Assembly: GCF_003918875.1 (NCBI RefSeq)
Contig: NW_025766955.1
Span: forward strand, 372,001 to 436,000
Length of the DNA: 64,000 nucleotides
Source of the DNA: Haliotis rubra
Taxonomy: Eukaryota
Direction: 5' to 3'
Of this stretch, positions 754 to 35,233 are shown in pieces; the stretch's first letter is position 1, and each line of letters begins with the position of its first letter. The position numbers and the translations under genes are program-made. The notes beneath the pieces were generated by a model. That model saw nothing but the letters and a program-made list of their open reading frames with translations, searched no databases and was not told the DNA's origin.

Positions 754-1738
754 AACACCCTTCTGAATGTACCTCCTGCTCAAACATCACATACAAATAT
801 CAAACATAAACTGATGTCACGAGGCAGGTGAAATTGTCCCATGAAAACTTCTAAAATATGAATCCTCTGGTGAAAAGCCTGAAGTATGATGTTGGTAAAG
901 GAAATTGGTTTTCTGTCTGAAGGAATGTATTCTAAACATCTACAAACAGACAACTGAAGGAATGTATTCTAAACATCTACAAAAAAGACAAGTGCTGCAA
1001 TTCTGTGACAAATAAGCCTTGTAATGCAATTTTGTAACCAACTTGTATTCACGCCACAAGGACGACAGTAGATTCCGACCAGTTTCACCTAGGAATGTGA
1101 AAAAGTCATAAGTATGTTACTGCCTTTCAGAACCCTCCAGAAACAAACAAACCTCCCACAGTTTGCCCTGGTGCCCAAGTACAGATTAAGCCACTGGATA
1201 TATTAACTGATTGGACTACTAGGGACATACTGGATCTTGTGGAGAATAAAGAATCATGTTGAGTGAAGGCTATTGTTTGATGTGATGAAATCGTATCATC
1301 AGATGTGGTGAAGTTAAGGCCCCTTTCATACATGGCAGTGGTTTAGCTAGCACCACAATATCTTGCAGTGTCTTTAGACCACTTGAAAACACAGTTCCTG
1401 AAATGTCATGAAAATTGCTTGAAACATTTCAAAACTTTTTAAGTTAAAATGAAATATATATTCTTGTTGTTATCACAGAACTGAGTGGCGCTGGCTAGTC
1501 TGTTAGATCTCACCGATCCTGCAGTGCTTCCAGTACAGAGCTTCAGGTCATGTTCTCAATGCCTTCTTGTCAAATGATTTCTGGCACAAAACACAAACAC
1601 ACAGTGCATAAAACATCCAAGATGACAGTTATACAAACTACAGTCTAGTGCACACTTAATGATGGGAATTGATCTGATCTGAACACTGGTGCTGTCCGTC
1701 CTCAGCTCATCTCAAACCAATTGTTTCTCCAAACTTCT

Positions 1739-2374
1739 CTATCGCCTCTTCTTTGCCCCTCCTCTTCCTCTTCCCCCAACCTTGGCCTCCTCGGCTGTCC
1801 TCTTCACTCCTCTTCCTCTTCCTCTGGCTGGCTTCACAACCTCCATCTCTTCCTCCTCTGGTTCCGACTCTTCCACTTTCTTCCCCTTCTTCCCCTTTAC
1901 GACCGCCTTCCCCTTGGCAGGACCTTTACCCTTGCCTCGCCCCTTTGGCTTCTTCACTTCCTCCTCCTCCTCTTCTTCTTCATCTTCTTCAACTGCTGCT
2001 GCCTTCCCCTTGGCAGGACCTTTACCCTTGCCTCGCCCCTTTGGCTTCTTCACTTCCTCTTCCTCCTCCTCTTCTTCTTCATCTTCTTCAACTGCTGCTG
2101 CCTTCCCCTTGGCAGGACCTTTACCCTTGCCTCGCCCCGTTGGCTTCTTCACTTCCTCTTCCTCTGCCTTCTTCCCTTTACCTTTGGGTTCTTTCTTGGG
2201 TGGATCTGGTTCCCCTGGAATCTTGCCACCTGGATAACGTTTGAGGACCTGGTTCCACCCACCTGCAGTCTTCCAAAATGTCCACTTATAGCCATCGGTC
2301 TGGATAGAGAACTTGACAGCCTTGACCAGTCGGTCGAACAGTTCCTTCTTGGTTGGGGGCTTCAGCTTCAGGAG
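1739..2374 (-). CDS. Gene A last coding exon: end of globular domain, K/G-rich and poly-E repeat tail, ends RGRGGAKKRR*
   Basis: cttacag|CTC acceptor; 212 codons including stop, open from LLKLKPPTKKELFDRL to TAG; internal 96- and 99-bp coding repeats. Confidence 0.88.
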   Translation of the reverse strand, partial: LLKLKPPTKKELFDRLVKAVKFSIQTDGYKWTFWKTAGGWNQVLKRYPGGKIPGEPDPPKKEPKGKGKKAEEEEVKKPTGRGKGKGPAKGKAAAVEEDEEEEEEEEEVKKPKGRGKGKGPAKGKAAAVEEDEEEEEEEEVKKPKGRGKGKGPAKGKAVVKGKKGKKVEESEPEEEEMEVVKPARGRGRGVKRTAEEAKVGGRGRGGAKKRR

Positions 2375-2708
2375 CTGTAAGATGATGATATATTTCTGTC
2401 ACCAAGATAACTTCGATCATATATTTAGCATTACTGACCTGGGCACCGTTCCTCAAGGTGACTGTAATGCTACTGTTGTCATGGGTCTAAGGCCTTAGAG
2501 TTAGGATATGAGAAGATCGTCTTAGACTCACTCATTTTAATACACCACTTTTAGTTCTGCGTAAGTCATCATATGTCTATTGCTCTGATTGTCAAGCCTA
2601 CTTTGCCCCTGATTGTCAAACCTACCTCATACAAGTCATTGTAAGTCTAAATGTCGTATGTTACACTGATCATCAAAAGTACCATGTACAAGTCATCGTA
2701 AGTCTCAC

Positions 2709-2870
2709 CTTGTACCAGTCATCGTAAGTGTTCATGTCGTTGATCTGCTGCACGGCTCCTTTCATCTGCTTCACCATGTCTGGTGAGGGGAATCCGTGGT
2801 TTTCATCGTAGCGTTTCAGGAGCTCCTTTCGGGATTTTCCAGCAGGCATTGCAATATCCAGGAACAGCAC
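2709..2870 (-). CDS. Gene A coding exon 4 (VLFLDIAMP...YDENHGFPSPDMVKQMKGAVQQINDMNTYDDWYK)
   Basis: ctccag|GTG acceptor and AAG|GTGAGA donor; 162 nt, phase 0->0. Confidence 0.88.
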
Positions 2871-2937
2871 CTGGAGTTGAAATAGTGTTTAAAAAACAAA
2901 TCTTCACAAATTTATCCTGCCCAATGACAGTTTTTCT

Positions 2938-3530
2938 TGGACCTCTCTGCATGGATATCTAATGACACCTCTCTGCATGGACATCTAATGACACCTCTCT
3001 ACATGGACATCTAATGACACCTCTCTGCATGGATATCTAATGACACCTCACTACATGGACATCTAATGACACCTCTCTGCATGGACATCTAGTGACACCT
3101 CTCTACATGGACATCTAATGACACCTCTCTACATGGACATCTAATGACACCTCTCTACATGGACATCTAATGACATCTCTCTACATGGACATCTAATGAC
3201 ACCTCCCTGTATGGACATCTAATGACACCTCTCTGTATGGACATCTAATGACACCTCCCTGTATTGACATCTAATGACACCTCCCTGTATGGACATCTAA
3301 TGACACCTCCCTGTATGGACATCTAATGACACCTCTCTGTATGGACATCTAATGACATCTCTGTATGGACATCTAATGACACCTCCCTGCATAGACATCT
3401 AATGACACCTGTATTGACATCTCACCTCCCTGCATAGACATCTAATGACACCTCTCTGCATAGACATCTAATGACACCTCCCTGTATGGACATCTAATGA
3501 TACTTCTCTGTATGGACATCTAATGACATC
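2938..3530. repeat. 26-bp minisatellite (GACACCTCTCTGCATGGACATCTAAT), ~22 copies
   Basis: Period measured 2962->2988. Confidence 0.92.
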
Positions 3531-3934
3531 TCTAAACGAAATCTTACCCTGTATGGAGTCTGAATTTCAGAGGAGATGGTTTCAGATCCAGAAATGTATT
3601 TTGCAATAGCACTGTCAACGTAAGCTCCACATTTAAACTATTTACAAAATGAAGCACCACTACCAACTAAACACATGCCAAATTTCTGAACAGTTTTTAA
3701 GTTAAGGCCTCAAATAAACACAATATATGGCATTGGTTCAACCCACTTGCACAAACTCAGGCAGGAGGGAGGGTGGAATCATTGACCTTCACTGACAGAA
3801 TAGTTTCTGAGGGGAAGACGTTGATGGAGATTACTGACAAGTAAGTCATGACAAAAATATCATTTTCAGTCAGGACAGGTAAAATCACAAAGATATGAGC
3901 ATGTTTTTTAATGGCGTGTGACAACCTCCAGTAC

Positions 3935-4100
3935 CTGGAAGGCGAGGAGCTTCCTGCTGACGGCGGTGCGGGTGAGGGTGTTGGTCAGGCGGTAGTCCAT
4001 GTCGGTGTCCACATAACCCAGCTGTGCATCGTCCTTCACGTACCACATCACGTTCCGCTTGAATGACTCTGACAGGTAGGCATGAGCTGCATCCGACCAT
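3935..4100 (-). CDS. Gene A coding exon 3 (RWSDAAHAYLSESFKRNVMWYVKDDAQLGYVDTDMDYRLTNTLTRTAVSRKLLAFQ)
   Basis: ttgacag|A acceptor and CAG|GTACTG donor; 166 nt, phase 2->0. The true frame differs from the ORF-track call 3885..4100. Confidence 0.85.
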
Positions 4101-4523
4101 CTGTCAACACACCGTCAAGATGAAAACAGCAACAACAGCAACAGCAACAACAACAACAGCAACAACACTGCCTCTACTACCAATGATGACTCTGACAGGT
4201 AGGCATGAGCTGCATCTGACCATCTGTCAACACACCGTCAAGATGAAAACAGCAACAACAGCAACAGCAACAACAACAACAGCAACAACACTGGCTCTAC
4301 TACCAATGATGACTCTAACACTGCATCTGACCATCTGTCAACACAAGATGAAAACAGCAACAACAGCAACAGCAATAACAACACAACCACCAATGATGAC
4401 TCTGACAGGTAGGCATGAGCTGCATCTGACCATCTGTCAACACACCGTCAAGATGAAAACAGCAACAACAGCAACAGCAATAACAACAGCAACAACACTG
4501 GCTCTACTACCAGTGATGACTCT
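4063..4523. repeat. ~100-123-bp tandem repeat that includes the 3' splice site and start of gene A exon 3
   Basis: Four GACCATCTGTCAACAC copies with (CAA/CAG)n tracts. Confidence 0.9.
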
Positions 4524-5445
4524 TCAAGAGAGTGCAAGGGAGCTGTTGTAACCACATCTCTGTGCTGCTCTCTGTAAACGTTACACTTCACTAGTGACCA
4601 CGCAGAGCTATGGGCTGTCCTACAGAGTTAATGTAACCACAGTTGACTCCATAACAGCACCCTGTAGATGTGGATGAATGCATTCTCTACTCCCTGGGGA
4701 GTATACAGCCCAAGCTGGCATATGTGTGAATTTACCTCACAGCCTCATCTTATTGGGAACCCATTCACTGGGTATCTGGGGCAACTTGAAGTCACTTGCC
4801 TCACGCAAACTGACCACAGTCCCAGAAACTCTAAGGAGCTGGCTACTCATTGTACCCCCCCCTCTCTCCCCCAACTGTAACTGTGACCAGCTGGGTCTGT
4901 CAACATCCCCTTCACCATTGGATGGCCGATCACTGCTTCAATACTCAAGCACAGTCCAGGCAAGAATGTGTTATCAAGAAACGGTTATGTTAGTTCAACA
5001 ATTCAGTGTTATTCAGCATCCTAAATATGATATACTATGAATACCAAACCGCGAGGAATGGTGTGTTCCGAGAAAATTTCAATTTTGCCTTGTGAATTCA
5101 CATGTACAGACAATTTGTAACTCTGAACTAACTTTTGGTATTGACCATGGCCTTCCTTTTGGGAATTTTGTAGACAATAAAATTGATTGAGTCAAAACGA
5201 ACGATGGATGACATCATCGTCAATGATTTGTACTGATGAGGTCACATGACATCACACTGGGCAATAGTTGTTAAACAAGCAGACATCACACTGATGTATG
5301 GAGTTAATGTTACAAGGAGTCTCTGATAAACTCATTTGCATATTTATCACACAGTGATGCCAAGCTGATTGGTTCGGTTTATTACATTGATACACCCCGG
5401 GTCCATATGTTAATGTCTAGCAGGGCTATGTTGTCATGGCAGTAC

Positions 5446-5537
5446 CTGTACTTGCTGGATGCTGTGAGAAGAAGAAGCCATTCCCCAATATGAGGACACG
5501 CTCTCTTGGTTCGATTTGTCTCAGAATCAATGAAGAC
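5446..5537 (-). CDS. Gene A coding exon 2 (VFIDSETNRTKRACPHIGEWLLLLTASSKY)
   Basis: ttctgcag|GTC acceptor and AG|GTACTG donor; 92 nt, phase 0->2, in frame with both neighbours. Confidence 0.85.
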
Positions 5538-5649
5538 CTGCAGAAAATATAATTGGACAGTTAAATTGTTATCTTTAAATGATGTAACAGACACAGATTT
5601 ATCCAACACAAAATGGTGTGGTTTGGGATGTGATTATGTTTGAGAATAT

Positions 5650-8092
5650 ATAGACATTCTTGCTACTACTGGCATCTAGGATGGGTACATGTTTGAGGAT
5701 ATAGAGACATTCTTGCTACTACTGGCATCTAGGATGGGTACATGTTTGAGGAAATAGAGACATTCTTGCTACTACTGGCATCTAGGATGGGTACATGTTT
5801 GAGGATATAGAGACATTCTTGCTACTACTGACATCTAGGATGGGTACATGTTTGAGGATATAGAGACATTCTTGCTACTACTGGCATCTAGGATGGGTAC
5901 ATGTTTGAGGATATAGAGACACTCTTGCTACTACTGGCATCTAGGATGGGTACATGTTTGAGGATATAGAGACTCTCTTGCTACTACTGGCATCTAGGAT
6001 GGGTACATGTTTGAGGATATAGAGACATTCTTGCTACTACTGGCATCTAGGAAGGGTACATGTTTGAGGATATAGAGACACTCTTGCTACTACTGGCATC
6101 TAGGATGGGTACATGTTTGAGGATATAGAGACATTCTTGCTACTACTGGCATCTAGGATGGGTACATGTTTGAGGATATAGAGACATTCTTGCTACTACT
6201 GGCATCTAGGATGGGTACATGTTTGAGGATATAGAGACACTCTTGCTACTACTGGCATCTAGGATGGGTACATGTTTGAGGATATAGAGACACTCTTGCT
6301 ACTACTGGCATCTAGGATGGGTACATGTTTGAGGATATAGAGACATTCTTGCCACTACTGACATCTAGGATGGGTACATGATTGAGGATATAGAGACATT
6401 CTTGCTACTACTGGCATCTAGGATGGGTACATGTTTGAGGATATAGAGACATTCTTGCTACTACTGGCATCTAGGATGGGTACATGTTTGAGGATATAGA
6501 GACACTCTTGCTACTACTGGCATCTAGGATGGGTACATGTTTGAGGATATAGAGACTCTCTTGCTACTACTGGCATCTAGGATGCGTACATGTTTGAGGA
6601 TATAAAGACATTCTTGCTACTACTGGCATCTAGGATGGGTACATGTTTGAGGATATAGAGACTCTCTTGCTACTACTGGCATCTAGGATGCGTACATGTT
6701 TGAGGATATAAAGACATTCTTGCTACTACTGGCATCTAGGATGGGTACATGTTTGAGGATATAGAGACACTCTTGCTACTACTGGCATCTAGGATGGGTA
6801 CATGTTTGAGGATATAGAGACACTCTTGCTACTACTGGCATCCAGGATGGGTACATGTTTGAGGATATAGAGACTCTCTTGCTACTACTGGCATCTAGGA
6901 TGCGTACATGTTTGAGGATATAAGGACATTCTTGCTACTACTGGCATCTAGGATGGGTACATGTTTGAGGATATAGAGACACTCTTGCTACTACTGGCAT
7001 CTAGGATGGGTACATGTTTGAGGATATAGAGACATTCTTGCTACTACTGGCATCTAGGATGGGTACATGTTTGAGGATATAGAGACATTCTTGCTACTAC
7101 TGACATCTAGGATGGGTACATGTTTGAGGATATAAAGACATTCTTGCTACTACTGGCATCTAGGATGGGTACATGTTTGAGGATCATTATAGAGACATTC
7201 TTGCTACTACTGACATCTAGGATGGGTACATGTTTGAGGATATAGAGACATTCTTGCTACTACTGACATCTAGGATGGGTACATGTTTGAGGATATAAAG
7301 ACATTCTTGCTACTACTGGCATCTAGGATGGGTACATGTTTGAGGATATAGAGACATTCTTGCTACTACTGACATCTAGGATGGGTACATGTTTGAGGAT
7401 ATAGAGACATTCTTGCTACTACTGACATCTAGGATGGGTACATGTTTGAGGATATAAAGACATTCTTGCTACTACTGGCATCTAGGATGGGTACATGTTT
7501 GAGGATCATTATAGAGACATTCTTGCTACTACTGACATCTAGGATGGGTACATGTTTGAGGATATAGAGACACTCTTGCTACTACTGGCATCTAGGATGG
7601 GTACATGTTTGAGGATATAGAGACACTCTTGCTACTACTGGCATCTAGGATGGGTACATGTTTGAGGATATAGAGACACTCTTGCTACTACTGGCATCTA
7701 GGATGGGTACATGTTTGAGGATATAGAGACATTCTTGCTACTACTGGCATCTAGGATGGGTACATGTTTGAGGATATAGAGACATTCTTGCTACTACTGG
7801 CATCTAGGATGGGTACATGTTTGAGGATATAGAGACATTCTTGCTACTACTGGCATCTAGGATGGGTACATGTTTGAGGATATAGAGACATTCTTGCTAC
7901 TACTGACATCTAGGATGGGTACATGTTTGAGGATATAGAGACATTCTTGCTACTACTGGCATCTAGGAAGGGTACATGTTTGAGGATATAGAGACACTCT
8001 TGCTACTACTGGCATCTAGGATGGGTACATGTTTGAGGATATAGAGACATTCTTGCTACCACTGGCATCTAGGATGGGTACATGTTTGAGGA
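5650..8092. repeat. 53-bp minisatellite, ~46 copies
   Basis: GACATTCTTGCTACTACTGGCATCTAGGATGGGTACATGTTTGAGGATATAGA; period 5706->5759. Confidence 0.95.
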
Positions 8093-8481
8093 CTGACCCC
8101 ATGACCTGCAGGAAGAATGACCACAGTCACCACTGTTACAGATAGGACAGTTTTACATATGTGCCACTGCCAGTGACAGAGTGAGGCACTGTTGGGTGGA
8201 AGCTCATGACCTTCAGGTGAGTTGCCAAACCCAGAAACATCTCAACAAAGATGGAAACATATTACCTTGACCCATGGCCAGATAATCCAATTTCCATTAA
8301 GAATCTCTTTTAAATCAATTTCCAGGAAAGACAAATGACTTAAGGGCCTAAATACTTACCATTAACTTATGGCTGATAAATCTCACCTTCAGAATCTCTT
8401 TCACAATAATTTATATTAAAGCCAAAGAAAGTAAGAACCTAAAGTGTTACCTTCAGGCAAGGGTAGATAATCCAACCTCAC

Positions 8482-9552
8482 CTTCAGCCTCTCTTCTACA
8501 ATGTCCTGCAGTTCGGTGTAGATCTCCATAGCCCACAGCAGTAGCCGGTGCAGAGCAAAATAGCCATTGAGACTGTTCTCACTGGTGTGCTGGGTTCCCT
8601 TGGAGAACTCAACAACGGTGGCACTCATGAGGTTTGGTATGACTTTCAGAACCATCTCGGCCACCGTCTTTCTCTTGCAGCTTAGCAACAGCTGGGCCAA
8701 CTCCTTCATCGTGGCTTCAAATGTTGGCTGGATCTCGTTGCCATGGAGAGGGTGGATGTAGAGAGGGAGGAAGTACTTCAGGTCCTCCTTCATCACACTC
8801 TGAACCTTACCCATGGACTTCAGCATCCCGCAGTAGGACTCTCCCGTCAGGAACTCACATGGCGTGGTCAGGGAGGGTCTACTTGGAGGGCCCGACACAA
8901 CCAGCCCATAACCGTACAAATCATTCTGTGATTTTGGCTTCGCAACTTTAAACCGATCCTTAGAGATGTAGTCGACAATTTCAGGCTTACCATCATCCTT
9001 GACCTTCGGGGCTTTAGCAGCTGGTTTGGTTTCTAAAGAAGGATAGGGCTTCTTGTATGTGTGGCCACATTCTTTACACGTGAAGCTTTTGGACAGTTTG
9101 AGGTTGTGGCTATTGGCTTCCTTCATCCAAGCCCAGTCAGATGCCTGAGTCTCAGCCAGAAATGAGATGACGTTCATCAGAACAGTCTGGACGGTATATC
9201 CAGGGGACCATCCAAGGGCCTTCTGATCAGCCCATTCTGTATGAATGTCAGCAAAGTCACTGAAAATGTTCAGACATATTTTTGTCCCTCGTTTTCCTGG
9301 TTTGGTTGCTCCACTGTTGTACTGGAAGCCAGAAGGAACAAACTCAGCACTTGGGGAGTCGTATGGATAGTTGTTGGGGAAGAACAGCAGCAGGTGGTAT
9401 ATGATGTCATCTTGTTTAATGTTACAGTGCCACTCAAACATGTCTTCATCCAGCGGTACAGCTGAAACATTCTCAACAGGGTTCTTGTTGAGCTCATCTT
9501 GGTCGAACATCAGGCGACGCATCGACCTCTTTCGTACTACATCAGCGCACAT
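8482..9552 (-). CDS. Gene A coding exon 1: atypical ubiquitin-conjugating (UBC/E2)-fold domain, CxxC-G-H motif and start of an unassigned domain
   Basis: 357 codons from ATG (context AAGATG) to donor AAG|GTGAGG at 8481. E2 hallmarks: RRLMFD helix, SAVPLDEDMFEWH, FPNNYPYDSP, KICLNI (Cys93 at 9274-9276), GWSPGYTVQTVLMNVISFL. An acceptor ttttgtttcag| precedes 9571, so an upstream exon exists. Confidence 0.9.
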
Positions 9553-10335: not shown

Positions 10336-10439
10336 TAATTTGTACTATACGATGTCTAGAGTATGCAGATTAAGGACTTACATGTTCACTATTTAGCTTT
10401 CTGTTGTTTCCAACTGTATTTTTGTGTTTGACAAATGTA

Positions 10440-11027
10440 ATGACGTATCGTTGCAAAGAATGTACTTTTGAGACCTCTATCTTACGTCAGTATGTCAGAC
10501 ATTATCGTTTACACAGAAACGTACCAAACATTGTGTTTCCATGTTGTCAGGAGCTTTGTGTAAGACAATTTCACACGTACAGTGCGTTTCGAGCACACGT
10601 ACTGCGTGATCATGGGCGCAACACAAACACGAGTCAGTCAAGGTCAGTAAATGGCCAGTCACATGTGAATGTGCATCTTGTATGTAGGCAAAGCTTTTGT
10701 GACAGTACATTCTCTCGTATCGAGGAGCTCTTGAAACATTTGCGTCAGCATTTAGACAGAAGGGATCCCATTGTTTGTCCATTTAGATCATGCAATACCA
10801 AAATTGTACATAAATAAACATTCTCATCTCATATAAGTAGAAAGCACAAGCACCACACATTATCGGAGTTATCAGATTCAGTTCTTGAAGCAAATAACAC
10901 ACATACAAATACAGATGAAGGACAGCTCTGCATATCTATACAAACAGACAACAGATTGGTTGAAGCTGATCTTGAAGAAAGTGAAATGGTAGTCTGTTTG
11001 CGTTTAGTGTTTTTCTGTTTCATGTAA
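10440..11027 (+). pseudogene. Four C2H2 zinc fingers, the N-terminal relic of a CACTA/EnSpm-type transposon ORF, with a premature TAA at 10815-10817
   Basis: CKEC-x12-H-x3-H, CQELC-x12-H-x4-H, CRQSFC-x12-H-x3-H and CPFRSC-NTKIVHK*TFSS-H-ISRK-H. The frame stays open 69 codons past the stop, and a CACTG terminus lies downstream. Confidence 0.75.
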
Positions 11028-11514: not shown

Positions 11515-11795
11515 TCATCGTATATTTTACGGTATGAATACATTCGGTACACCGTAAAGCTACTGGTTTTGTACCGGCAGCACGGCTGCCAAACTATTAC
11601 CGTATATTTTACGGTATGAATTATTACGGTATCCCGTAAAGCTACTGGTTTTGTACCGGCAGCATGGCTGCCAGAGTTTTACCGTATATTTTACGGTATG
11701 AATTTATTACGGTATCCCGTAAAGCTACTGAGTTTTTACCGGCAGCATGGCTGCCAAACTTTTACCGTAAAAATTAACGGTAAAGTTTTACAGTG
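11515..11795 (+). mobile_element. Right end of a CACTA/EnSpm-type DNA transposon with subterminal repeats
   Basis: Ends TTTTACAGTG (CACTGTAAAA on the minus strand); about three ~80-bp repeats carrying the palindromes ACCGTAtatttTACGGT and GGCAGCatgGCTGCC. Confidence 0.75.
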
Positions 11796-12500
11796 CAAGA
11801 GCTGCTTTAGCTGCAGCATCGGCCTTAGTGTTACCTGCTATGCCGACGTGACCCGGCGACCAGCAGAGGACGATGTCACATTGGCCAGTAGATAGGTCGT
11901 TGAAAAGTTCTAAAATGTCCAGGATGATTGGGTGACTTGAAGTAACATTTTGAAGTGCTTGAAGGCAAGATAATGAATCTGTAAAAACGATGACGTTTTT
12001 GGAATGATTTTGCTGTTTAATGTAGGTAAAAGCTGAGAAGATAGCTTTGGCATCAGCGGTGAAAATGGAAATGTTGTCGGGAATCCTAGAGGAGACAGTC
12101 TTGGATTCTATAACTGTAGCACTGGCAACTTGGCCATGGTCCTTGGATCCGTCTGTGAAAATGGATGTGTTATACTTAGGACGTAACTGGTTGTATTCCT
12201 GTTGGAACACCAAGGGATTTGTTTCAGACTTTCTGAGTTTGGTGAGGGTAAGATCGACCTGTGGTTTCACCATCTGCCAGGGTAGTGAAGACAGAAGTCG
12301 GTAAGGTAATGATATTGAGATCGAGTTTAGCTGCAGATATGTGTGGTTGAATTCTGATTCCAAGTGGTGGAACCAGGCTTGGCAGATTAGGAAACGTTTT
12401 CATAGAGAGGGCTGAAAACACAATTGTATGCTGGATTGGACTCATTTGAACGTAATTTAGTGATATACTGCAGTGAAAGTTTAATGCGGCGTTGTTCTGA
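11796..12500 (-). mobile_element. Decayed non-LTR retrotransposon (I-group-like) pol fragment with RNase H domain
   Basis: IFTDGSK...SIFTAD(E)AKAI...VFTDSLS...WSPGHVGIAGNTKADAAAK. Upstream EQRRIKLSLQYITKL..NPAYNCVF..PPLGIRI is broken by frameshifts and stops. Confidence 0.9.
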
Positions 12501-20074: not shown

Positions 20075-22396
20075 CACAACCAACAAGCATCTAGTCACAC
20101 AACCAGCATCTAGTCACACAACCAACAAGCGTCTAGTCACACAACCAACAAGCATCTAGTCACACAACCAACAAACAAGTCACACAACCAACAAGCATCT
20201 AGTCACACAACCAGCATCTAGTCACACAACCAACAAGCGTCTAGTCACACAACCAACAAGCGTCTAGTCACACAACCAACAAGCATCTAGTCACACAACC
20301 AACAAGCGTCTAGTCACACAACCAACAAGCATCTAGTCACACAACCAACAAGCATCTAGTCACACAACCCAACATCTAGTCACACAACCAACATCTAGTC
20401 ACACAACCAACAAGCATCTAGTCACACAACCAACAAACATCTAGTCACACAACCAACAAGCATCTAGTCACACAACCAACAAGCATCTAGTCACACAACC
20501 AGCATCTAGTCACACAACCAACAAGCATCTAGTCACACAACCAAACAACACCAACAAGCGTCCTAGTCACACAACCAACAAGCATCTAGTCATCACACAA
20601 CCAACAAGCATCTAGTCACACAACCAACAAGCATCTAGTCACACAACCAACAAGCATCTAGTCACACAACCAACAAGCATCTAGTCACACAACCAACAAG
20701 CGTCTAGTCACACAACCAACAAGCATCTAGTCACACAACCAACAAGCATCTATCTAGCGCCACACAACCAACAAGCATCTAGTCAACACAACCAACAAGC
20801 ATCTAGTCACACAACCAACATCAACCAACAAGCATCTAGTCACACAACCAACAAGCATCTAGTCACACAACCAACAAGCATCTAGTCACACAACCAACAA
20901 GCATCTAGTCACACAACCAACACACAACCAACAAGCATCTAGTCACACACAACCAACAAGCATCTAGTCACACAACAAGCATCTAGTCACAACCAACAAG
21001 CATCTAGTCACACAACCAACAAGCATCTAGTCACACAACCAACAAGCATCTAGTCACACAACCAACAAGCATCTAGTCACACAACCAACAAGCATCTAGT
21101 CACACAACCAACAAGCATCTAGTCACACAACCAACAAGCATCTAGTCACACAACCAACAAGCATCTAGTCTAGTCACACAACCAACAAGCATCTAGTCAC
21201 ACAACCAACAACATCTAGTCACGTCAACAAGTCTAGTCACACAACCAACAAGCATCTAGTCACACAACCAACAAGCATCTAGTCACACAACCAACAAGCA
21301 TCTAGTCACACAACCAACAAGCATCCAACAAGCACCTAGTCACACAACCAACAAGCATCTAGTCACACAACCAACATCTAGTCACACAACCAACAAGCAT
21401 CTAGTCACACAACCAACAAGCATCTAGTCACACAACCAACAAGCATCTAGTCACACAACCAACAAGCATCTAGTCACACAACCAACAAGCATCTAGTCAC
21501 ACAACCAACAAGCATCTAGTCACACAACCAACAAGCATCTAGTCACACAACCAACAAGCATCTAGTCACACAACCAACAAGCATCTAGTCACACAACCAA
21601 CAAGCATCTAGTCACACAACCAACAAGCATCTAGTCACACAACCAACAAGCATCTAGTCACACAACCAACAACCAACAAGCATCTAGTCACACACACAAC
21701 AAGCATCTAGTCACACAACCAACAAGCATCTAGTCACACAACCAACAAGCATCTAGTCACACAACCAAGGCATCTAGTCACACAACCAACAAGCATCTAG
21801 TCACACAACCAACAACTAGTCACACAACCAACAATCTAGTCACACAACCAACAAGCATCTAGTCACACAACCAACAAGCATCTAGTCCAACACACAACTA
21901 GTCAACAAGCATCTAGCATCTAGTCACACAACCAACAAGCATCTAGTCACACAACCAACAAGCATCTAGTCACACACACAACCAACAAGCATCTAGTCTA
22001 GTCACACAGTCTAGTCACACAACCAACAAGCATCTAGTCACACAACCAACAAGCATCTAGTCACACAACCAACAAGCATCTAGTCACACAACCAACAAGC
22101 ATCTAGTCACAAAAACTAGTCACACAACCAACAAGCATCTAGTCACACAACCAAGTCACACAACCAAGCAACAACCAGCATCTAGTCACACAACCAACAA
22201 GCATCTAGTCACACAACCAACAAGCATCTAGTCACACAACCAACAAGCATCTAGTCACACAACCAACAAGCATCTAGTCACACAACCAACAAGCATCTAG
22301 TCACACAACCAGCATCTAGTCACACAACCAACAAGCATCTAGTCACACAACCAACAAGCATCTAGTCACACAACCAACAAGCATCTAGTCACACAA
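20075..22396. repeat. 23-bp minisatellite (CACACAACCAACAAGCATCTAGT), ~100 copies
   Basis: Direct reading. Confidence 0.95.
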
Positions 22397-23283
22397 AGGC
22401 ACACAATGATTACATTAAACGTTAGTCAATGAAACAATGAAGATATCAAATATAACATGATGCAAATTTTCTCATGCTAAATCTATTCAGGTCCACAGAA
22501 ATTTTAACAGTGATAAAATTGAGGTTCAACGAGTTTCTGATCAGAGTTTGCACAGCCATAGGACAATCTTCATAAATGTTAATAAACATCATCAGCTATC
22601 TGTAGTCTGTCTAATATCAGTTTTCTCAACAACTTCCAATGATAAATATTGATATGTAAACAATTCTGCGACTTCATCTTATGCCTAAATACAGGATATA
22701 GGATCTTCTACTCAAGGAGAATTTCCTGTATTTAATTTCAGTTTTGTGCCAAACAGAAAGAGTTCAGGTTCAGGTCACTTAAAGCTGGACCTGTTTCCAC
22801 ATCCTGGTGTCTTTCCTCTGTCACTGAATTTTCAATTAGCTCTCCTGAACAGATCTGAAACACCTGGGATTCCAACCAATCATCTTCAGTTTCTGGCATG
22901 TCAAAGGGATGAATCTCTGCACGATGAATTGTGGTGGCTAAGCCTCTATCGATACTCTGACCAAACTGAGATCCTAAGCTGAGAGCTGGGAGAGAGTTCA
23001 CACGTGGTATCAGTGAGTGTTAATCTGGCTTGTGCTTCAGGAATTACCTGCCTGTGTCAACAAACTCTGACCAGGGGCAACAGAACATTGTTAGTGAGGG
23101 AACTCAGAAACACTTCAACGTTTCAATTCTGTCAATCTTCAACAGGGTTGTCATGCCAACTTACCATGCATAGTTAGTGAGGTTCTAAAATGCAAATTTG
23201 AAAGAACACGTTCCACAAGGAAAACTTGGCAATCTTGTTTGTTCAACGAGTGCAGGGACCTGAATAGTGTTGAGAAAACTTAC

Positions 23284-24544
23284 AATGAAGACAGGCGGCC
23301 CTTCTCCCACATTGCTGTCTGTGCAGACATCTGCAGCCGCCATCTTGGATGGGCTAGGGGCAGGGGAGATAACTCTATATGCTGGATGTGACTGATGATG
23401 AGCAAAGACTGGGTTACAGGGTTGGGCCGGGGGGTGGGACTGGACTCTACCAGTTGGCTGGGAGGGGGTGAAGGACTCAATGTCTAATGGAAAGGGCCTT
23501 GGAGCCACAGAGTTGGAAACAGGGGAGACAGGTTTGAATATTGCTGGATCAATTGCCATGGCTGCCTCCTTCTCTACAGCAGCAATAGCAGCATTCAGGT
23601 CAAGGGGGAATGGTTTGACGTCCTTGTCGTCCACAGGCAAGGCCATCTCGTCATCGAAACTTTCAGAGGACTCCATTGCTCCAGATGTTCTCTTGGTGCC
23701 GCCAACCCTTGTGAGAGCATCACTTTCAGAGACCGGAACTGGGAAGGGATTGTCCTCCTTCATGTTTAGCGGGGCAGCAGCTGTCTGGAATGGTTCTGTC
23801 ACTTCTCCACTATCTCCAGCTGCTTGTGGTGGAAGTGTTGGAACGGCAGCATGTTCGGCTGCTGGGCTGATCACACACTCAGACTCCGATGTCGGACTGG
23901 TGAGGGTGATGGCAGGAATCAGTCCGGGGCCGGACAGTCTCCGGGATTCAGTCCAGGCAACTCCGCTCTCAGGACCATGTGTAGAATTCATGCTAGAAGT
24001 GGGCTGCTTACTCTCCACAGAGGTAGAATCCGAGAAGGGATTTGTCGAAACAGGAGCATCAGTGGTGGAGAACTTAGAACCAGAATGGAACGCATGTGAT
24101 GCTTGAGGAGCACTAGCTGGGTATGTAACTGAAGCTGGTGTTGTGACAGTGGACGGGGTGGGGGTGGAGGCAGGGTTAGAGGAACATGGAACAGTGATGT
24201 TGGAAGGGAGGATGGTTGTAGGGTTTGAGGGGAGAGTGATTGTAGGGTCTGAAGGGGAGGGTGGGTGTAGGGTTTGAGGGGAGGGTGGTTGTAGAGTCTG
24301 AGGGGAGGATGGGTGTGGGATTGGTGGTTGTCTGGGAGGTGGCAGGGAAGTCAATGAGTATCTCATCCCCTTCTGAACCCTGGGTTAGCGGAGCATGAAG
24401 CTGGGTTAGCTCTGGAGGAGCACACATGCCCTGCCCCTCCTCCTGGGAGGGGTCTGTCTGGGGGTGGGGAAGAAGCACCTTTTGGGGAACTTTGGGTCTA
24501 GCAGGAACTGGAGGTGGCTGCTTAGCTTTGGCTTTCTCTGGAGG
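23284..24544 (-). CDS. EPB41L5: Large Pro/Ser/Thr-rich exon (PPEKAKAKQPPPVPARP...GPPVFI) with an apparent +1 frameshift at 24252-24253
   Basis: ttcatcag|CCT acceptor and ATT|GTAAGT donor; length 1261 = 3n+1. ORFs 24176..24649 and 23185..24366 are the two halves. Confidence 0.75.
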
Positions 24545-24988
24545 CTGATGAAAGGAGCAAAATGAAACGAAATGTGAAGACAACGAAGACAATATAACAG
24601 AACAATCATGGCACATCACACGGAAATGAAAGTTACAGAAAAGCAACAAAATTTACAAAGATGATGGAACTGAAATTTAAGAGCTGGATCCCATTCCACA
24701 AAGTAGTCTTAATTCTACCACAGCTGTAGTTCCAACACTGAGAGAGTGCTATGACTGCTTTGTGAATCAGGGCCCTGGTGTTCTTCATATAAAGCACTTA
24801 AGACACAAACCTACAACAGAACATTACTCCTGAACATAACATACATACAGATATACAAAGGTCAGAGCCCTGCATTGCCTATATGGCTATACATAAGCTT
24901 GACAGTCATGAGTTCAAGCCAACTATTAAATTTTATGTGTTACAACAAAAAAAGCAGAAGTGCCCCCTCCACCTACAAAGCACACTCC

Positions 24989-25225
24989 TCGATCTATACA
25001 CAACATCTGCATGTAACACCCTCCACTATCACAGCACACCCCTCAAACTACACAGGTCAAGTTCGATCTATACACGACAACATCTGCATGTAACACCCTC
25101 CACTATCACAGCACACCCCTCAAACTACACAGGACAAGTTCGATCTATACACGACAACATCTGCATGTAACACCCTCCACTATCACAGCACACCCCTCAA
25201 ACTACACAGGACAAGTTCGATCTAT
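24989..25225. repeat. 77-bp tandem repeat x3
   Basis: Period 25063->25140. Confidence 0.85.
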
Positions 25226-25246
25226 GCAGGATGACCTGCTCACCTC

Positions 25247-28200
25247 GATATATACACCATACCTTGATCTATACTTGACATGTCAATACACAGCACCGCT
25301 TGATATACACCATACCTTGATCTATACTTGACATGTCAATACACAGCACTGCTTGATATACACCATACCTTGATCTATACTTGACATGTCAATACACAGC
25401 ATCGCTTGATATACACCATACCTTGATCTATACTTGACATGTCAATACACAGCACTGCTTGATATACACCATACCTTGATCTATACTTGACATGTCAATA
25501 CACAGCACTGCTTGATATACACCATACCTTGATCTATACTTGACATGTCAATACACAGCACTGCTTGATATACACCATACCTTGATCTATACTTGACATG
25601 TCAATACACAGCATCGCTTGATATACACCATACCTTGATCTATACTTGACATGTCAATACACAGCACTGCTTGATATACACCATACCTTGATCTATACTT
25701 GACATGTCAATACACAGCACCGCTTGATATACATCATACCTTGATCTATACTTGACATGTCTATACACAGCATCGCTTGATATACACCATACCTTGATCT
25801 ATACTTACTTGACATGTCAATACACAGCATCGCTTGATATACACCATACCTTGATCTATACTTGACATGTCAATACACAGCATCGCTTGATATACACCAT
25901 ACCTTGATCTATACTTGACATGTCAATACACAGCATCGCTTGATATACACCATACCTTGATCTATACTTGACATGTCAATACACAGCATCGCTTGATATA
26001 CACCATACCTTGATCTATACTTGACATGTCAATACACAGCACGCTTGATATACACCATACCTTGATCTATACCTTGACATGTCTATACACAGCACACAGC
26101 TTGATATACACCATACCTTGATCTATACTTGACATGTCAATACACAGCACTGCTTGATATACATCATACCTTGATCTATACTTGACATGTCAATACACAG
26201 CATCGCTTGATATACACCATACCTTGATCTATACTTGACATGTCAATACACAGCATCGCTTGATATACACCATACCTTGATCTATACTTGACATGTCAAT
26301 ACACAGCATCGCTTGATATACACCATACCTTGATCTATACTTGACATGTCAATACACAGCACCGCTTGATATACACCATACCTTGATCTATACTTGACAT
26401 GTCAATACACAGCACCGCTTGATATACACCATACCTTGATCTATACTTGACATGTCAATACACAGCACCGCTTGATATACATCATACCTTGATCTATACT
26501 TGACATGTCAATACACAGCATCGCTTGATATACACCATACCTTGATCTATACTTGACATGTCAATACACAGCACTGCTTGATATACACCATACCTTGATC
26601 TATACTTGACATGTCAATACACAGCACCGCTTGATATACACCATACCTTGATCTATACTTGACATGTCTATACACAGCACCGCTTGATATACACCATACC
26701 TTGATCTATACTTGACATGTCAATACACAGCACTGCTTGATATACACCATACCTTGATCTATACTTGACATGTCAATACACAGCACTGCTTGATATACAC
26801 CATACCTTGATCTATACTTGACATGTCAATACACAGCATCGCTTGATATACACCATACCTTGATCTATACTTGACATGTCAATACACAGCACTGCTTGAT
26901 ATACACCATACCTTGATCTATACTTGACATGTCTATACACAGCAGCTTGATATACACCATACCTTGATCTATACTTGACATGTCAATACACAGCACGCTT
27001 GATATACACCATACCTTGATCTATACTTGACATGTCAATACACAGCACTGCTTGATATACACCATACCTTGATCTATACTTGACATGTCAATACACAGCA
27101 CCGCTTGATATACACCATACCTTGATCTATACTTGACATGTCTATACACAGCACTGCTTGATATACACCATACCTTGATCTATACTTGACATGTCAATAC
27201 ACAGCATCGCTTGATATACACCATACCTTGATCTATACTTGACATGTCAATACACAGCACAGCTTGATATACACCATACCTTGATCTATACTTGACATGT
27301 CAATACACAGCACGCTTTGATATACACCATACCTTGATCTATACTTGACATGTCAATACACAGCACCGCTTGATATACACCATACCTTGATCTATACTTG
27401 ACATGTCAATACACAGCACCGCTTGATATACACCATACCTTGATCTATACTTGACATGTCAATACACAGCATCGCTTGATATACACCATACCTTGATCTA
27501 TACTTGACATGTCAATACACAGCATCGCTTGATATACACCATACCTTGATCTATACTTGACATGTCAATACACAGCACCGCTTGATATACACCATACCCT
27601 TGATCTATACTTGACATGTCAATACACAGCACTGCTTGATATACACCATACCTTGATCTATACTTGACATGTCTATACACAGCACTGCTTGATATACACC
27701 ATACCTTGATCTATACTTGACATGTCAATACACAGCACCGCTTGATATACACCATACCTTGATCTATACTTGACATGTCTATACACAGCACTGCTTGATA
27801 TACACCATACCTTGATCTATGCTACTTGACATGTCTATACACAGCGCGCTTGATATACACCATACCTTGATCTATACTTGACATGTCAATACACAGCACA
27901 GCTTGATATACACCATACCTTGATCTATACTTGACATGTCAATACACAGCATCGCTTGATATACACCATACCTTGATCTATACTTGACATGTCAATACAC
28001 AGCACTGCTTGATATACACCATACCTTGATCTATACTTGACATGTCAATACACAGCACTGCTTGATATACACCATACCTTGATCTATACTTGACATGTCT
28101 ATACACAGCACTGCTTGATATACACCATACCTTGATCTATGCTTGACATAATCTATACACAGCACCGCTTGATATACACCATACCTTGATCTATACTTGA

Positions 28201-31200
28201 CATGTCAATACACAGCGCATAGCTTGATATACACCATACCTTGATCTATACTTGACATGTCTATGCAGCACAGCGCTGCAGCGATATACACCATACCTTG
28301 ATCTATGCTTGACATGTCTATACACAGCACGCTTGATATACACCATACCTTGATCTATACTTGACATGTCAATACACAGCACTGCTTGATATACACACCA
28401 TACCTTGATCTATACTTGACATGTCATATACACAGCAAGCGCTTGATATACACCATACCTTGATCTATACTTGACATGTCAATACACAGCACGCTTGATA
28501 TACACCATACCTTGATCTATACTTGACATGTCAATACACAGCACTGCTTGATATACACCATACCTTGATCTATACTTGACATGTCTATACACAGCACTGC
28601 TTGATATACACCATACCTTGATCTATACTTGACATGTCAATACACAGCACGCTTGATATACACCATACCTTGATCTATACTTGACATGTCAATACACAGC
28701 ACGCTTGATATACACCATACCTTGATCTATACTTGACATGTCAATACACAGCACCGCTTGATATACACCATACCTTGATCTATACTTGACATGTCAATAC
28801 ACAGCACGCTTGATATACACCATACCTTGATCTATACTTGACATGTCTATACACAGCATCGCTTGATATACACCATACCTTGATCTATACTTGACATGTC
28901 AATACACAGCATCGCTTGATATACACCATACCTTGATCTATACTTGACATGTCTATACACAGCACCGCTTGATATACACCATACCTTGATCTATACTTGA
29001 CATGTCAATACACAGCACTGCTTGATATACACCATACCTTGATCTATACTTGACATGTCAATACACAGCATCGCTTGATATACACCATACCTTGATCTAT
29101 ACTTGACATGTCTATACACAGCACGCGCTTGATATACACCATACCTTGATCTATGCTTGACATGTCAATACACAGCACTGCTTGATATACACCATACCTT
29201 GATCTATACTTGACATGTCAATACACAGCACTGCTTGATATACACCATACCTTGATCTATACTTGACATGTCTATACACAGCACTGCTTGATATACACCA
29301 TACCTTGATCTATACTTGACATGTCAATACACAGCACTGCTTGATATACACCATACCTTGATCTATACTTGACATGTCTATACACAGCACCGCTTGATAT
29401 ACACCATACCTTGATCTATACTTGACATGTCTATACACAGCACTGCTTGATATACACCATACCTTGATCTATACTTGACATGTCAATACACAGCATCGCT
29501 TGATATACACCATACCTTGATCTATACTTGACATGTCAATACACAGCACTGCTTGATATACACCATACCTTGATCTATACTTGACATGTCTATACACAGC
29601 ATCTGCTTGATATACACCATACCTTGATCTATACTTGACATGTCAATACACACAGCACCGCTTGATATACACCATACCTTGATCTATACTTGACATGTCA
29701 ATACACAGCACTGCTTGATATACACCATACCTTGATCTATACTTGACATGTCTATACACAGCACGCTTGATATACACCATACCTTGATCTATACTTGACA
29801 TGTCAATACACAGCACTGCTTGATATACACCATACCTTGATCTATGCTTGACATGTCAATACACAGCAGCGCTTGATATACACCATACCTTGATCTATAC
29901 TTGACATGTCAATACACAGCACCGCTTGATATACACCATACCTTGATCTATACTTGACATGTCAATACACAGCACTCGCTTGATATATACACCATACCTT
30001 GATCTATACTTGACATGTCAATACACAGCATCGCTTGATATACACCATACCTTGATCTATACTTGACTTGACATGTCAATACAATGCACGCGCAGCGATA
30101 TACACCATGCACCTTGATCTATATTGACATGTCAATACACAGCACGCTTGATATATACACCATACCTTGATCTATACTTGACATGTCAATACACAGCACT
30201 GCTTGATATACACCATACCTTGATCTATACTTGACATGTCAATACACAGCACGCTTGATATACACCATACCTTGATCTATACTTGACATGTCAATACACA
30301 GCACCGCTTGATATACACCATACCTTGATCTATACTTGACATGTCAATACACAGCACTGCTTGATATACACCATACCTTGATCTATACTTGACATGTCTA
30401 TACACAGCACTGCTTGATATACACCATACCTTGATCTATACTTGACATGTCAATACACAGCACGCTTGATATACACCATACCTTGATCTATGCTTGACAT
30501 GTCAATACACAGCACGGCTTGATATACACCATACCTTGATCTATACTTGACATGTCTATACACAGCACAGCTTGATATACACCATACCTTGATCTATACT
30601 TGACATGTCAATACACAGCATAAAGCTTGATATACACCATACCTTGATCTATACTTGACATGTCTATTAACTTGATATACACCATACCTTGATCTATACT
30701 TGACATGTCTATACACAGCACCGCTTGATATACACCATACCTTGATCTATACTTGACATGTCTATACACAGCATCGCTTGATATACACCATACCTTGATC
30801 TATACTTGACATGTCTATACACAGCACTGCTTGATATACACCATACCTTGATCTATGCTTGACATGTCTATACACAGCACGCTTGATATACACCATACCT
30901 TGATCTATACTTGACATGTCAATACACAGCATCGCTTGATATACACCATACCTTGATCTATACTTGACATGTCAATACACAGCACGCTTGATATACACCA
31001 TACCTTGATCTATACTTGACATGTCTATACACAGCACAGCTTGATATACACCATACCTTGATCTATACTTGACATGTCAATACACAGCACCGCTTGATAT
31101 ACACCATACCTTGATCTATACTTGACATGTCTATACACAGCACGCTTGATATACACCATACCTTGATCTATACTTGACATGTCAATACACAGCACGCTTG

Positions 31201-34200
31201 ATATACACCATACCTTGATCTATACTTGACATGTCTATACACAGCACTGCTTTGATATACACCATACCTTGATCTATACTTGACATGTCAATACACAGCA
31301 CGCTTTGATATACACCATACCTTGATCTATGCTTGACATGTCAATACACAGCACGCTTGATATACACCATACCTTGATCTATGCTTGACATGTCAATACA
31401 CAGCACTGCTTGATATACACCATACCTTGATCTATACTTGACATGTCAATACACAGCACTGCTTGATATACACCATACCTTGATCTATACTTGACATGTC
31501 AATACACAGCACAGCTTGATATACACCATACCTTGATCTATACTTGACATGTCAATACACAGCACGCTTGATATACACCATACCTTGATCTATACTTGAC
31601 ATGTCAATACACAGCACGCTTGATATACACCATACCTTGATCTATACTTGACATGTCAATACACAGCACGCTTTGATATACACCATACCTTGATCTATAC
31701 TTGACATGTCAATACACAGCACAGCTTGATATACACCATACCTTGATCTATACTTGACATGTCAATACACAGCACGCTTGATATACACCATACCTTGATC
31801 TATACTTGACATGTCAATACACAGCATCGCTTGATATACACCATACCTTGATCTATACTTGACATGTCTATACACAGCACTGCTTGATATACACCATACC
31901 TTGATCTATACTTGACATGTCTATACACAGCATCGCTTGATATACACCATACCTTGATCTATACTTGACATGTCTATACACAGCACGCGCTTGATATACA
32001 CCATACCTTGATCTATACTTGACATGTCTATACACAGCATCGCTTGATATACACCATACCTTGATCTATACTTGACATGTCAATACACAGCACGCTTGAT
32101 ATACACCATACCTTGATCTATACTTGACATGTCTATACACAGCATCGCTTGATATACACCATACCTTGATCTATACTTGACATGTCTATACACAGCACGC
32201 TTGATATACACCATACCTTGATCTATACTTGACATGTCTATACACAGCACGCTTTGATATACACCATACCTTGATCTATACTTGACATGTCAATACACAG
32301 CACTGCTTGATATACACCATACCTTGATCTATACTTGACATGTCAATACACAGCACTGCTTGATATACACCATACCTTGATCTATACTTGACATGTCTAT
32401 ACACAGCACGCTTGATATACACCATACCTTGATCTATACTTGACATGTCTATACACAGCACCGCTTGATATACACCATACCTTGATCTATACTTGACATG
32501 TCAATACACAGCACTGCTTGATATACACCATACCTTGATCTATACTACTTGACATGTCAATACACAGCACCGCTTGATATACACCATACCTTGATCTATA
32601 CTTGACATGTCTATACACAGCACTGCTTGATATACACCATACCTTGATCTATACTTGACATGTCAATACACAGCACTGCTTGATATACACCATACCTTGA
32701 TCTATACTTGACATGTCAATACACAGCATCGCTTGATATACACCATACCTTGATCTATACTTGACATGTCAATACACAGCACTGCTTGATATACACCATA
32801 CCTTGATCTATACTTGACATGTCAATACACAGCACTGCTTGATATACACCATACCTTGATCTATACTTGACATGTCAATACACAGCACTGCTTGATATAC
32901 ACCATACCTTGATCTATACTTGACATGTCAATACACAGCACTGCTTGATATACACCATACCTTGATCTATACTTGACATGTCAATACACAGCACGCTTGA
33001 TATACACCATACCTTGATCTATACTTGACATGTCAATACACAGCACCGCTTGATATACACCATACCTTGATCTATACTTGACATGTCAATACACAGCACT
33101 GCTTGATATACACCATACCTTGATCTATACTTGACATGTCAATACACAGCACTGCTTGATATACACCATACCTTGATCTATACTTGACATGTCAATACAC
33201 AGCACCGCTTGATATACACCATACCTTGATCTATACTTGACATGTCAATACACAGCACGCTTGATATACACCATACCTTGATCTATACTTGACATGTCAA
33301 TACACAGCACCGCTTGATATACACCATACCTTGATCTATACTTGACATGTCAATACACAGCACGCTTGATATACACCATACCTTGATCTATACTTGACAT
33401 GTCAATACACAGCATCGCTTGATATACACCATACCTTGATCTATACTTGACATGTCAATACACAGCATCGCTTTGATATACACCATACCTTGATCTATAC
33501 TTGACATGTCAATACACAGCACGCTTGATATACACCATACCTTGATCTATACTTGACATGTCAATACACAGCACGCTTGATATACACCATACCTTGATCT
33601 ATACTTGACATGTCTATACACAGCATCGCTTGATATACACCATACCTTGATCTATACTTGACATGTCAATACACAGCATCGCTTGATATACACCATACCT
33701 TGATCTATACTTGACATGTCAATACACAGCATCGCTTGATATACACCATACCTTGATCTATACTTGACATGTCAATACACAGCACTGCTTGATATACACC
33801 ATACCTTGATCTATACTTGACATGTCTATACACAGCACTGCTTGATATACACCATACCTTGATCTATACTTGACATGTCTATACACAGCACTGCTTGATA
33901 TACACCATACCTTGATCTATACTTGACATGTCAATACACAGCACTGCTTGATATACACCATACCTTGATCTATACTTGACATGTCAATACACAGCACTGC
34001 TTGATATACACCATACCTTGATCTATACTTGACATGTCAATACACAGCACTGCTTGATATACACCATACCTTGATCTATACTTGACATGTCAATACACAG
34101 CATCGCTTGATATACACCATACCTTGATCTATACTTGACATGTCAATACACAGCACCGCTTGATATACACCATACCTTGATCTATACTTGACATGTCTAT

Positions 34201-34418
34201 ACACAGCATCGCTTGATATACACCACACCTTGATCTATACTTGACATGTCAATACACAGCACTGCTTGATATACACCACACCTTGATCTATACTTGACAT
34301 GTCAATACACAGCACTGCTTGATATACACCATACCTTGATCTATACTTGACATGTCAATACACAGCACCGCTTGATATATACACCATACCTTGATCTATA
34401 CTTGACATGTCAATACAC
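25247..34418. repeat. 9.2-kb 53-bp minisatellite, ~170 copies
   Basis: GCTTGATATACACCATACCTTGATCTATACTTGACATGTCAATACACAGCACT. Confidence 0.97.
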
Positions 34419-34466
34419 AAGACAACACTAACACCCTCCACCAACACAGAATATGTCAAGCTCTGA

Positions 34467-35105
34467 GGCCACCCCTGCTCAAACACAGGACATCCCCACT
34501 CAGGCCACACAGGAAATCCTGTCCAACACAGGCCACCCTGCTCAAACACAGGGCCACTGCTCCCAACACAGGCCACCCCTGCTCCAACACAGGCCAACCC
34601 TGCTCCAACAACACAGGCCACCCCTGCTCCAACACGGGCCACCCCTGCTCCAACACGGGCCATCCCTGCTCCAACACGGGCCACCCTGCTCCAACACGGG
34701 CCACCCCTGCTCCCTGCTCCAACACAGGCCACCCCCTGCTCCAACACGGGCCACCCCTGCCAACAGGCCACCCCTGCTCCAACGCGGGCCACCCCCTGTT
34801 CCAACACGGGCCACCCCTGCTCCAACACGGGCCACCCCTGCTCCAACATGGGCCACCCCTGCTCCAACACGGGCCACCCCTGCTCCAACACGGGCCACCC
34901 CTGCTCCAACAGGACACCCCTGCAACACAGGACACCCCTGCCACACAGGACCCTGCTCCAACACGGGCCTTCCCCAGGACACCCCTGCTCCAACACAGGA
35001 CACCCCTGCTCCAACACAGGACACCCCTGCTCCAACACAGGACACCCCTGCACCAACACGGGCCACCCCTCCACAAACACAGGACACCCCTGCTCCAACA
35101 CAGGA
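34467..35105. repeat. 21-bp GC-rich minisatellite (GGCCACCCCTGCTCCAACACG)
   Basis: Direct reading; a unit length divisible by 3 explains the ORFs on both strands. Confidence 0.92.
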
Positions 35106-35233
35106 CCTGCACCTTTACATTCACCAACACCAGAACACCCTCCACCTATAGACCTGGTACCTTTACATTTACTAACAAGGACACCCTCCACCTTGACAGG
35201 TGTTACCCAGTGATATGCTTGGAAGTGATTTAC

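Follow-up and report, generated by a model that had tools for sequence, protein, structure and literature searches.

A candidate single-chain E2-E3 in abalone: an HPN-lacking ubiquitin-conjugating domain fused to a module of predicted UBR4-like fold

A stretch of 64,000 nucleotides of the abalone Haliotis rubra genome (contig NW_025766955.1, positions 372,001 to 436,000 of the forward strand; hereafter the window) contains a five-exon gene for a 708-amino-acid (aa) protein built on a ubiquitin-conjugating enzyme (E2) domain. We read this protein as a single-chain E2-E3, in which a UBC domain lacking the His-Pro-Asn (HPN) triad is joined through a knuckle and a variable linker to a module predicted to fold like the hemiRING-UZI of UBR4. 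We consider this reading fairly probable. A sequence-only reading of the window had proposed an E2 fusion whose appended domain supplies substrate recognition or E3-like activity, and that proposal is supported by the UBR4-like predicted fold and by the pairing of the two halves throughout the protein family.

The coding region spans 1739..9552 on the minus strand, as do all features of the gene given below. Its exons (9552-8482, 5537-5446, 4100-3935, 2870-2709 and 2374-1739) splice in frame into 2127 nucleotides (nt) encoding 708 aa plus a stop codon, with no internal stops, and all four introns have GT..AG ends. Public contigs were aligned to window positions 1700-5600. Three small contig sets (X1 and X2 from one species, X8 from a second) showed the joints 2374>2709, 2868/70>3933/35 and 4100>5446, with CT..AC ends, while none of these three joints was present in X15, a large DNA set in which the introns were covered. 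A loose contig end at 5543 reads TELQDIVEER on its reverse complement, which is the end of exon 1; with three introns skipped in the contigs and this end reading into exon 1, all four junctions are used in RNA. Since aa 1-622 are identical to the NCBI H. rubra 'uncharacterized protein LOC124281679 isoform X2', from which the window protein differs solely by one additional 33-residue tail repeat, the NCBI annotation independently gives a matching gene model. By this comparison the window gene appears to be LOC124281679 itself or its orthologue. One copy of the gene was found in the abalone assembly. The abalone gene is real, expressed and single copy. The five in-frame exons, the length of about 708 aa and the lack of stops claimed by the sequence-only reading were borne out by the splice check, the GT..AG ends and transcript contigs of two species. 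Every motif quoted in that reading was found in the spliced protein, and the comparison of its junctions with transcripts supported all four.

Several repeats lie within the gene. A 123-bp tandem duplication at 4063-4320 spans the exon 3 acceptor and the first 38 nt of that exon, leaving a second, intronic copy of the acceptor region; transcript contigs splice at acceptor 4100. Intron 1 carries a tandem array at 5636-8092 (46 units of 53 bp, 96% alike) and intron 3 a smaller one at 2941-3533 (18 units of 26 bp).

The UBC domain (aa 8-157; 9082..9531) matches Pfam UQ_con (PF00179) over aa 13-144 with an E-value of 1.8e-13 and has the alpha/beta fold of the UBC/E2 superfamily. It also has the superfamily's active-site cysteine. 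The presumed thioester residue, Cys93 (codon at 9274..9276), aligns with the active-site Cys of Ubc7 and Cdc34 and is a Cys in 95 of 96 aligned relatives from animals, protists and viruses, in which the flanking I/V-C-L-N/D-I-F motif is conserved as well. The HPN triad is the superfamily feature that is missing. In HMMER alignments to Cdc34 and Ubc7 its place is taken by QYN (aa 77-79; 9316..9324), and six extra residues precede Cys93 relative to Cdc34. HPN is absent throughout the 96-sequence alignment, with no conserved His or Pro: position 78 is Tyr in 63/96, His in 13/96 and Phe in 13/96, and position 79 is Asn in just 28/96. Its fold and its Cys place the protein in the UBC superfamily; its HPN site does not. 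Between Cys and WSP, 13-14 additional residues align (HMMER) with the insertion loop of Ubc7/UBE2G2 and Cdc34, which measures 12-13 residues after the Cys; the alignment is gapless to Ubc7 and has a 2-residue gap to Cdc34. This loop (aa 98-113, SDFADIHTEWADQKAL; 9214..9261) retains H104 in 79/96, E106 in 76/96 and W107 in 78/96 relatives. An N-terminal UBC fold, a retained Cys93, a replaced HPN and about 14 extra residues between Cys and WSP had all been noted from the sequence, and each was confirmed.

The E2s nearest to the UBC domain are the ubiquitin E2s Ubc7/UBE2G, Cdc34 and Rad6. Ubc7/UBE2G2 and Cdc34/UBE2R share the post-Cys insertion loop with the abalone protein, but they have the canonical HPN, are small single-domain proteins (with an acidic tail in Cdc34) and need separate RING E3s, whereas the abalone protein has QYN and a 390-aa extra module and so departs from the stand-alone architecture of that subfamily. 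Some orthologues are named 'UB2J1-like' or 'E2 6' in databases. Membership in Ubc6/UBE2J was rejected: the strongly charged tail lacks any hydrophobic segment or membrane anchor, and UBE2J2 and Ubc6 match at E ~1e-6 as against 2e-9 for Ubc7.

Some inactive E2 variants have lost HPN, and the protein might accordingly be a catalytically dead scaffold resembling ubiquitin E2 variants (UEVs), its UBC fold merely binding ubiquitin or partners. Inactive variants, however, typically lose the Cys, and Cys93 with its flanking motif is kept from animals to viruses. The strong constraint on this residue speaks against a dead, UEV-like fold, and we regard such a scaffold as very improbable. Alternatively, QYN, the extra loops and the conserved HTEW loop could reflect a conjugating enzyme for a ubiquitin-like modifier (Ubl) or for non-lysine acceptors. 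The family-wide replacement of HPN and the two lengthened, conserved active-site loops would suit such chemistry, as would the departures from HPN described for E2s of other Ubls and for serine-targeting E2s in two papers (PMC12032130, PMC11649903). Against this, our data identify no modifier and the nearest relatives of the UBC domain are ubiquitin E2s; the idea is also compatible with, rather than exclusive of, the single-chain E2-E3 reading. As a separate explanation we find it distinctly unlikely.

The second half of the conserved region (domain 2) was analyzed through structure prediction. From the single sequence of exon 1, AlphaFold gave a useless model, with a predicted local distance difference test (pLDDT) score of 32.6. 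Given the 96-sequence alignment, it modeled aa 1-545 as one compact body (pLDDT 93.7, predicted template modeling score [pTM] 0.90), and on these scores both halves are placed as a single body. Domain 2 opens with strands and a short helix, a hemiRING-like beta/alpha subdomain (aa 191-296; 8665..8982) that includes D194, G214, G216, C232, P263 and H267-x2-H270. It continues with 11-12 helices that form a UZI-like bundle (aa 297-521; 2303..8664, coordinates that run from the end of exon 1 through exons 2-4 into the start of exon 5, introns included), and it closes with a conserved C-terminal cap (aa 522-545, GYKW..GGW; 2231..2302; pLDDT 93-94) in which Y526 is nearly invariant. The mostly helical appended domain described from sequence is thus seen in the model.

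The best structural match of domain 2 is the hemiRING-UZI E3 module of human UBR4 (residues 4835-5183; PDB 8B5W and 8BTL; with UBE2A/UBE2B), the hemiRING-like subdomain corresponding to the N-terminal part of the match. As in UBR4, the model has a RING-related subdomain packed on a UZI bundle, which in the UBR4-type fold has 11 helices. The match surfaced solely with VIA-align, and we take it as specific because the top 50 hold no unrelated helical protein. With Foldseek, all 50 matches listed for the whole model against the PDB were E2s, and UBR4 was not among them. Pfam and PHROGs searches on domain 2 and the tail returned nothing significant. Of the kinds of check suggested by the sequence-only reading, the profile searches gave nothing significant and AlphaFold gave a confident model; the UBR4-like fold came from VIA-align and not from Foldseek. 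By these predictions, domain 2 resembles the UBR4 module by fold only.

Other identities for domain 2 were considered. A PDB profile match to MazG-like YpjD (E 0.16) was rejected, as the family lacks conserved acidic metal-binding helix motifs. Language-model neighbors of domain 2 from one relative (P0162, aa 193-545) were F-box only protein 47 clusters (ARM_FBXO47) at 0.80, which is chance level; an FBXO47 ARM identity stays a lead, with no Pfam or profile support. An F-box-like domain lies just ahead of domain 2 in some relatives and gives this lead its context.

Between the two halves lies a C159-x2-C162-x-H164 knuckle (CKECGH; 9061..9078), a candidate zinc ligand set by its conservation (C159 in 86/96, C162 in 79/96 and H164 in 87/96). 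Beyond this FTCKECGH segment, the conserved Cys/His candidates are position 194, C232, H270 (87/96) and, in lophotrochozoans, H267. Position 194 is Cys in 55/96 and Asp in 41/96 relatives, the abalone residue being D194. D194 goes with H267 in lophotrochozoans, and C194 with a residue other than His at 267 in most other relatives; as a single clade-level event, this pattern is a weak hint of alternative ligands at one candidate site.

The pairing of the two halves is a property of the whole family. Both halves are covered in 139 of the 224 collected relatives, and they co-occur even where 300-700 residues separate them, inserted where the abalone protein has its K/P-rich linker (aa 165-190; 8983..9060; pLDDT ~79-82). 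In P0036, P0044, P0052 and P0050, F-box-like or S1 domains occupy this insert. Across the long members with add-on domains (these four plus P0046, P0082 and P0123) the additions comprise F-box-like, LRR, VWA, TerD, CCCH, S1, RRM and CLU (CLU/eIF3-p135) domains, which are typical target or adaptor binders. A search with a domain-2 profile turned up no full-length protein in which domain 2 occurs in the absence of UBC; the matches lacking UQ_con were fragments on short contigs. In independently predicted models, the two-domain arrangement is kept in rotifer and ascomycete clusters from the Atlas (template modeling [TM] scores of 0.68 and 0.65) and in a Hyperionvirus protein (A0A3G5A9Q2; TM 0.84 at 24% identity). 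Proteins of Tetraselmis virus 1 (A0A2P0VP69) and Terrestrivirus (A0A3G4ZRM4) match over the full model with TM 0.70 and 0.73. These giant-virus proteins belong to the same two-domain family and are annotated just as 'E2 ubiquitin-conjugating enzyme', equally uncharacterized; unlike the abalone protein, to which they are 17-24% identical, they have no introns and no mollusc-type tail.

The abalone protein ends in a charged low-complexity tail (aa 546-708; 1742..2230) with 33-aa K/G/E repeats, RG/RGG motifs and a basic KKRR end, in agreement with the charged tail reported from sequence. The repeat is encoded by 2.7 copies of a 99-bp unit at 1905-2164. It varies in copy number, and transcript contigs break or lose 6 bases there. 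Tails of molluscs and of Lingula measure 100-240 residues, with ~30% K+R, 15-25% D+E, RG/RGG motifs and a basic end, and the Pelomyxa protein ends in a GR repeat. The composition of the mollusc tail suggests nuclear or RNA/nucleic-acid-associated targets. Several protist relatives carry RNA-binding domains, which point the same way as the RG-rich tail.

One alignment bears on how the halves may be arranged. The structure 8v0d_A is a crystal structure of a UbcH5B-MIB1 RING3 fusion in which each RING binds UbcH5B via conserved RING-E2 contacts. It aligns 184 residues across model positions 8-265, which exceeds what an E2 alone can give and is a hint that the hemiRING-like part occupies the place of a RING on an E2. 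A two-chain complex prediction of the UBC half against the domain-2 half, with the alignment unused, scored 0.14, which speaks neither for nor against docking. In the mechanism we propose, E1 would load ubiquitin or a ubiquitin-like protein onto Cys93, the hemiRING/UZI-like module would dock in cis on its own UBC domain, and the docked module would prime the thioester for discharge. Lineage-specific appendages would bring in targets, a role that in molluscs may fall to the basic/acidic RG-rich tail. The flexible linker may let the module cycle on and off and so leave access for E1.

Several points weigh against a single-chain E2-E3. E1 and E3 sites overlap on E2s, and a fixed RING-like dock would cover the E1 face. 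Most active E2s need HPN, which is absent here. The cis geometry rests on pTM and one indirect alignment, and any homology to UBR4 depends on a modeled structure, with 9% identity and a root-mean-square deviation of 4.6. Sequence methods detected no similarity to UBR4: PF13764 (E3_UbLigase_R4) gave no match for 67 family members at E <=1 or for six segments at E <=10, and a PDB profile search with the domain-2 alignment made no link to UBR4. The abalone genome has a separate UBR4 gene (G000:C1158:477246-489741), whose C-terminal region is split into many exons of 30-70 codons, and the family hidden Markov model (HMM) found no signal in a six-frame translation of that locus, the best score being 4 bits. 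The UBR4 module holds a single C2HC zinc site (C4838, C4841, H4887 and C4890). These CxxC...HxxC ligands are not kept at the aligned start of domain 2, where position 194 is C/D and position 197 is S/T; the abalone protein instead has its separate CxxCxH knuckle upstream.

Some of these points would suit an otherwise ordinary E2 whose second half is a regulatory or scaffold domain. Domain 2 would then have no E3 activity of its own; it would bind partners or substrates, or mask the RING-binding face, and a separate E3 would carry out transfer. A common fold is no proof of a common function, the zinc ligands of UBR4 are out of register and the searches turned up no sequence similarity to UBR4. 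Several relatives also carry an F-box-like domain, normally the part that connects to a cullin-RING ligase, and for them the separate E3 could be a complex of the SCF (Skp1-cullin-F-box) type. Yet the best structural match of domain 2 is a catalytic E3 module known to bind and activate an E2, and its strict pairing with this UBC domain, seen in giant viruses and in lineages very far apart, speaks for a functional unit. We therefore hold the scaffold explanation to be unlikely, and continue to favor a single-chain E2-E3.

An exhaustive search for relatives with the exon 1 protein (357 residues) as query returned 1018 at E <=0.001 and 394 at E <=1e-10. Many are 500-2300 aa long and match all 357 residues. 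Named members at 45-70% identity come from molluscs, the brachiopod Lingula and the annelid Dimorphilus. The proteins of Pelomyxa (P0008) and Physarum (P0225) are 42% identical to the abalone protein over ~525 residues, compared with 46% for the annelid orthologue, and more distant members occur in Gefionella, Soliformovum and Pyxidicula. Cluster and structure libraries added rotifers, diatoms, ascomycetes and giant viruses, and one relative (P0030) sits on a dense, intron-free, giant-virus-like contig of 57 kb. Our searches did not find the family in animals other than lophotrochozoans. Source names for members never go beyond 'uncharacterized', 'UBC core domain-containing', 'UB2J1-like' and 'E2 6'. 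Judged by these comparisons, the core of UBC, knuckle and domain 2 defines a large uncharacterized family of lophotrochozoans, amoebozoans, other protists, fungi and giant viruses.

A quick maximum-likelihood tree placed the lophotrochozoans in one clade (support 99) that roughly followed taxonomy and was sister (support 100) to the amoebozoan members, in a group containing Pelomyxa. The tree fits both an ancient origin with loss and gene transfer, and does not decide between them. Viral insertion as the origin of the abalone gene was rejected on the grounds of its spliced introns and of orthologues that roughly track mollusc phylogeny.

Among known systems, the UBR4 module is the closest to domain 2 by predicted fold, but the abalone protein has neither a UBR box nor a giant scaffold, and its E2 is covalently attached and not of the Rad6 type, whereas UBR4 docks on UBE2A in trans. 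The RING and cap-helical domain of yeast Ubr1 (PDB 7MEY, residues 1218-1641) is a much weaker match than UBR4; Ubr1 differs from the abalone protein in its complete two-zinc RING and in acting in trans with Ubc2. UBE2O and BIRC6 are the known natural animal E2/E3 hybrids, in which one polypeptide is thought to do both jobs, as we propose here; the UBE2O/BIRC6-type UBC domain with its characteristic flanking regions was not found in the abalone protein. Within the library searched, literature on hemiRING, UZI and E2-E3 fusions or hybrids covered UBR4 and SIFI papers, UBE2O, BIRC6 and engineered fusions, and none described a fusion family of the abalone type. More tentatively, the family may represent a natural single-chain ubiquitin ligase composed of a dedicated HPN-less E2 and a UBR-type hemiRING-UZI. 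It would then be the first UZI fold outside the UBR N-recognins, in an old eukaryotic family surviving in lophotrochozoans, amoebozoans, other protists, fungi and giant viruses.

Elsewhere in the window, a short open reading frame (ORF) at 10404-10817 (+), just upstream of the E2 gene, has weak C2H2 zinc-finger similarity (E 0.0025, sub-threshold in Pfam). An ORF at 11788-12363 (-) with an RNase H domain (E 9e-9) is a retroelement fragment, and one at 45312-45974 (-) with a FERM-adjacent (FA) motif (E 2.5e-5, under the Pfam cut-off) is probably an exon of a neighboring gene. Satellite-like arrays lie downstream of the gene at 20075-22396 (102 copies of 23 bp) and 25250-34419 (9.2 kb; 173 copies of 53 bp, 95% alike), followed by further arrays at 34518-35101 (22 copies of 21 bp) and 35554-36381 (27 copies of 31 bp). 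The strong GC skew at 20075-36381 is due to these arrays.

The UBR4 E3 module was reportedly defined in 2024, without relatives beyond UBR1-3, and is said to be hard to handle inside a 574-kDa protein. If our reading is true, the UBR4-type fold would extend past the N-degron ligases, and the abalone protein would join UBE2O and BIRC6 as a third kind of natural E2-E3 hybrid. Its 545-residue core would offer a minimal system for how a UBR4-type, linchpin-less RING-like module primes E2~ubiquitin. For hundreds of 'UBC core domain-containing' proteins from protists, molluscs and giant viruses, of which many carry RNA-binding or adaptor domains, the same reading offers a first lead on function.

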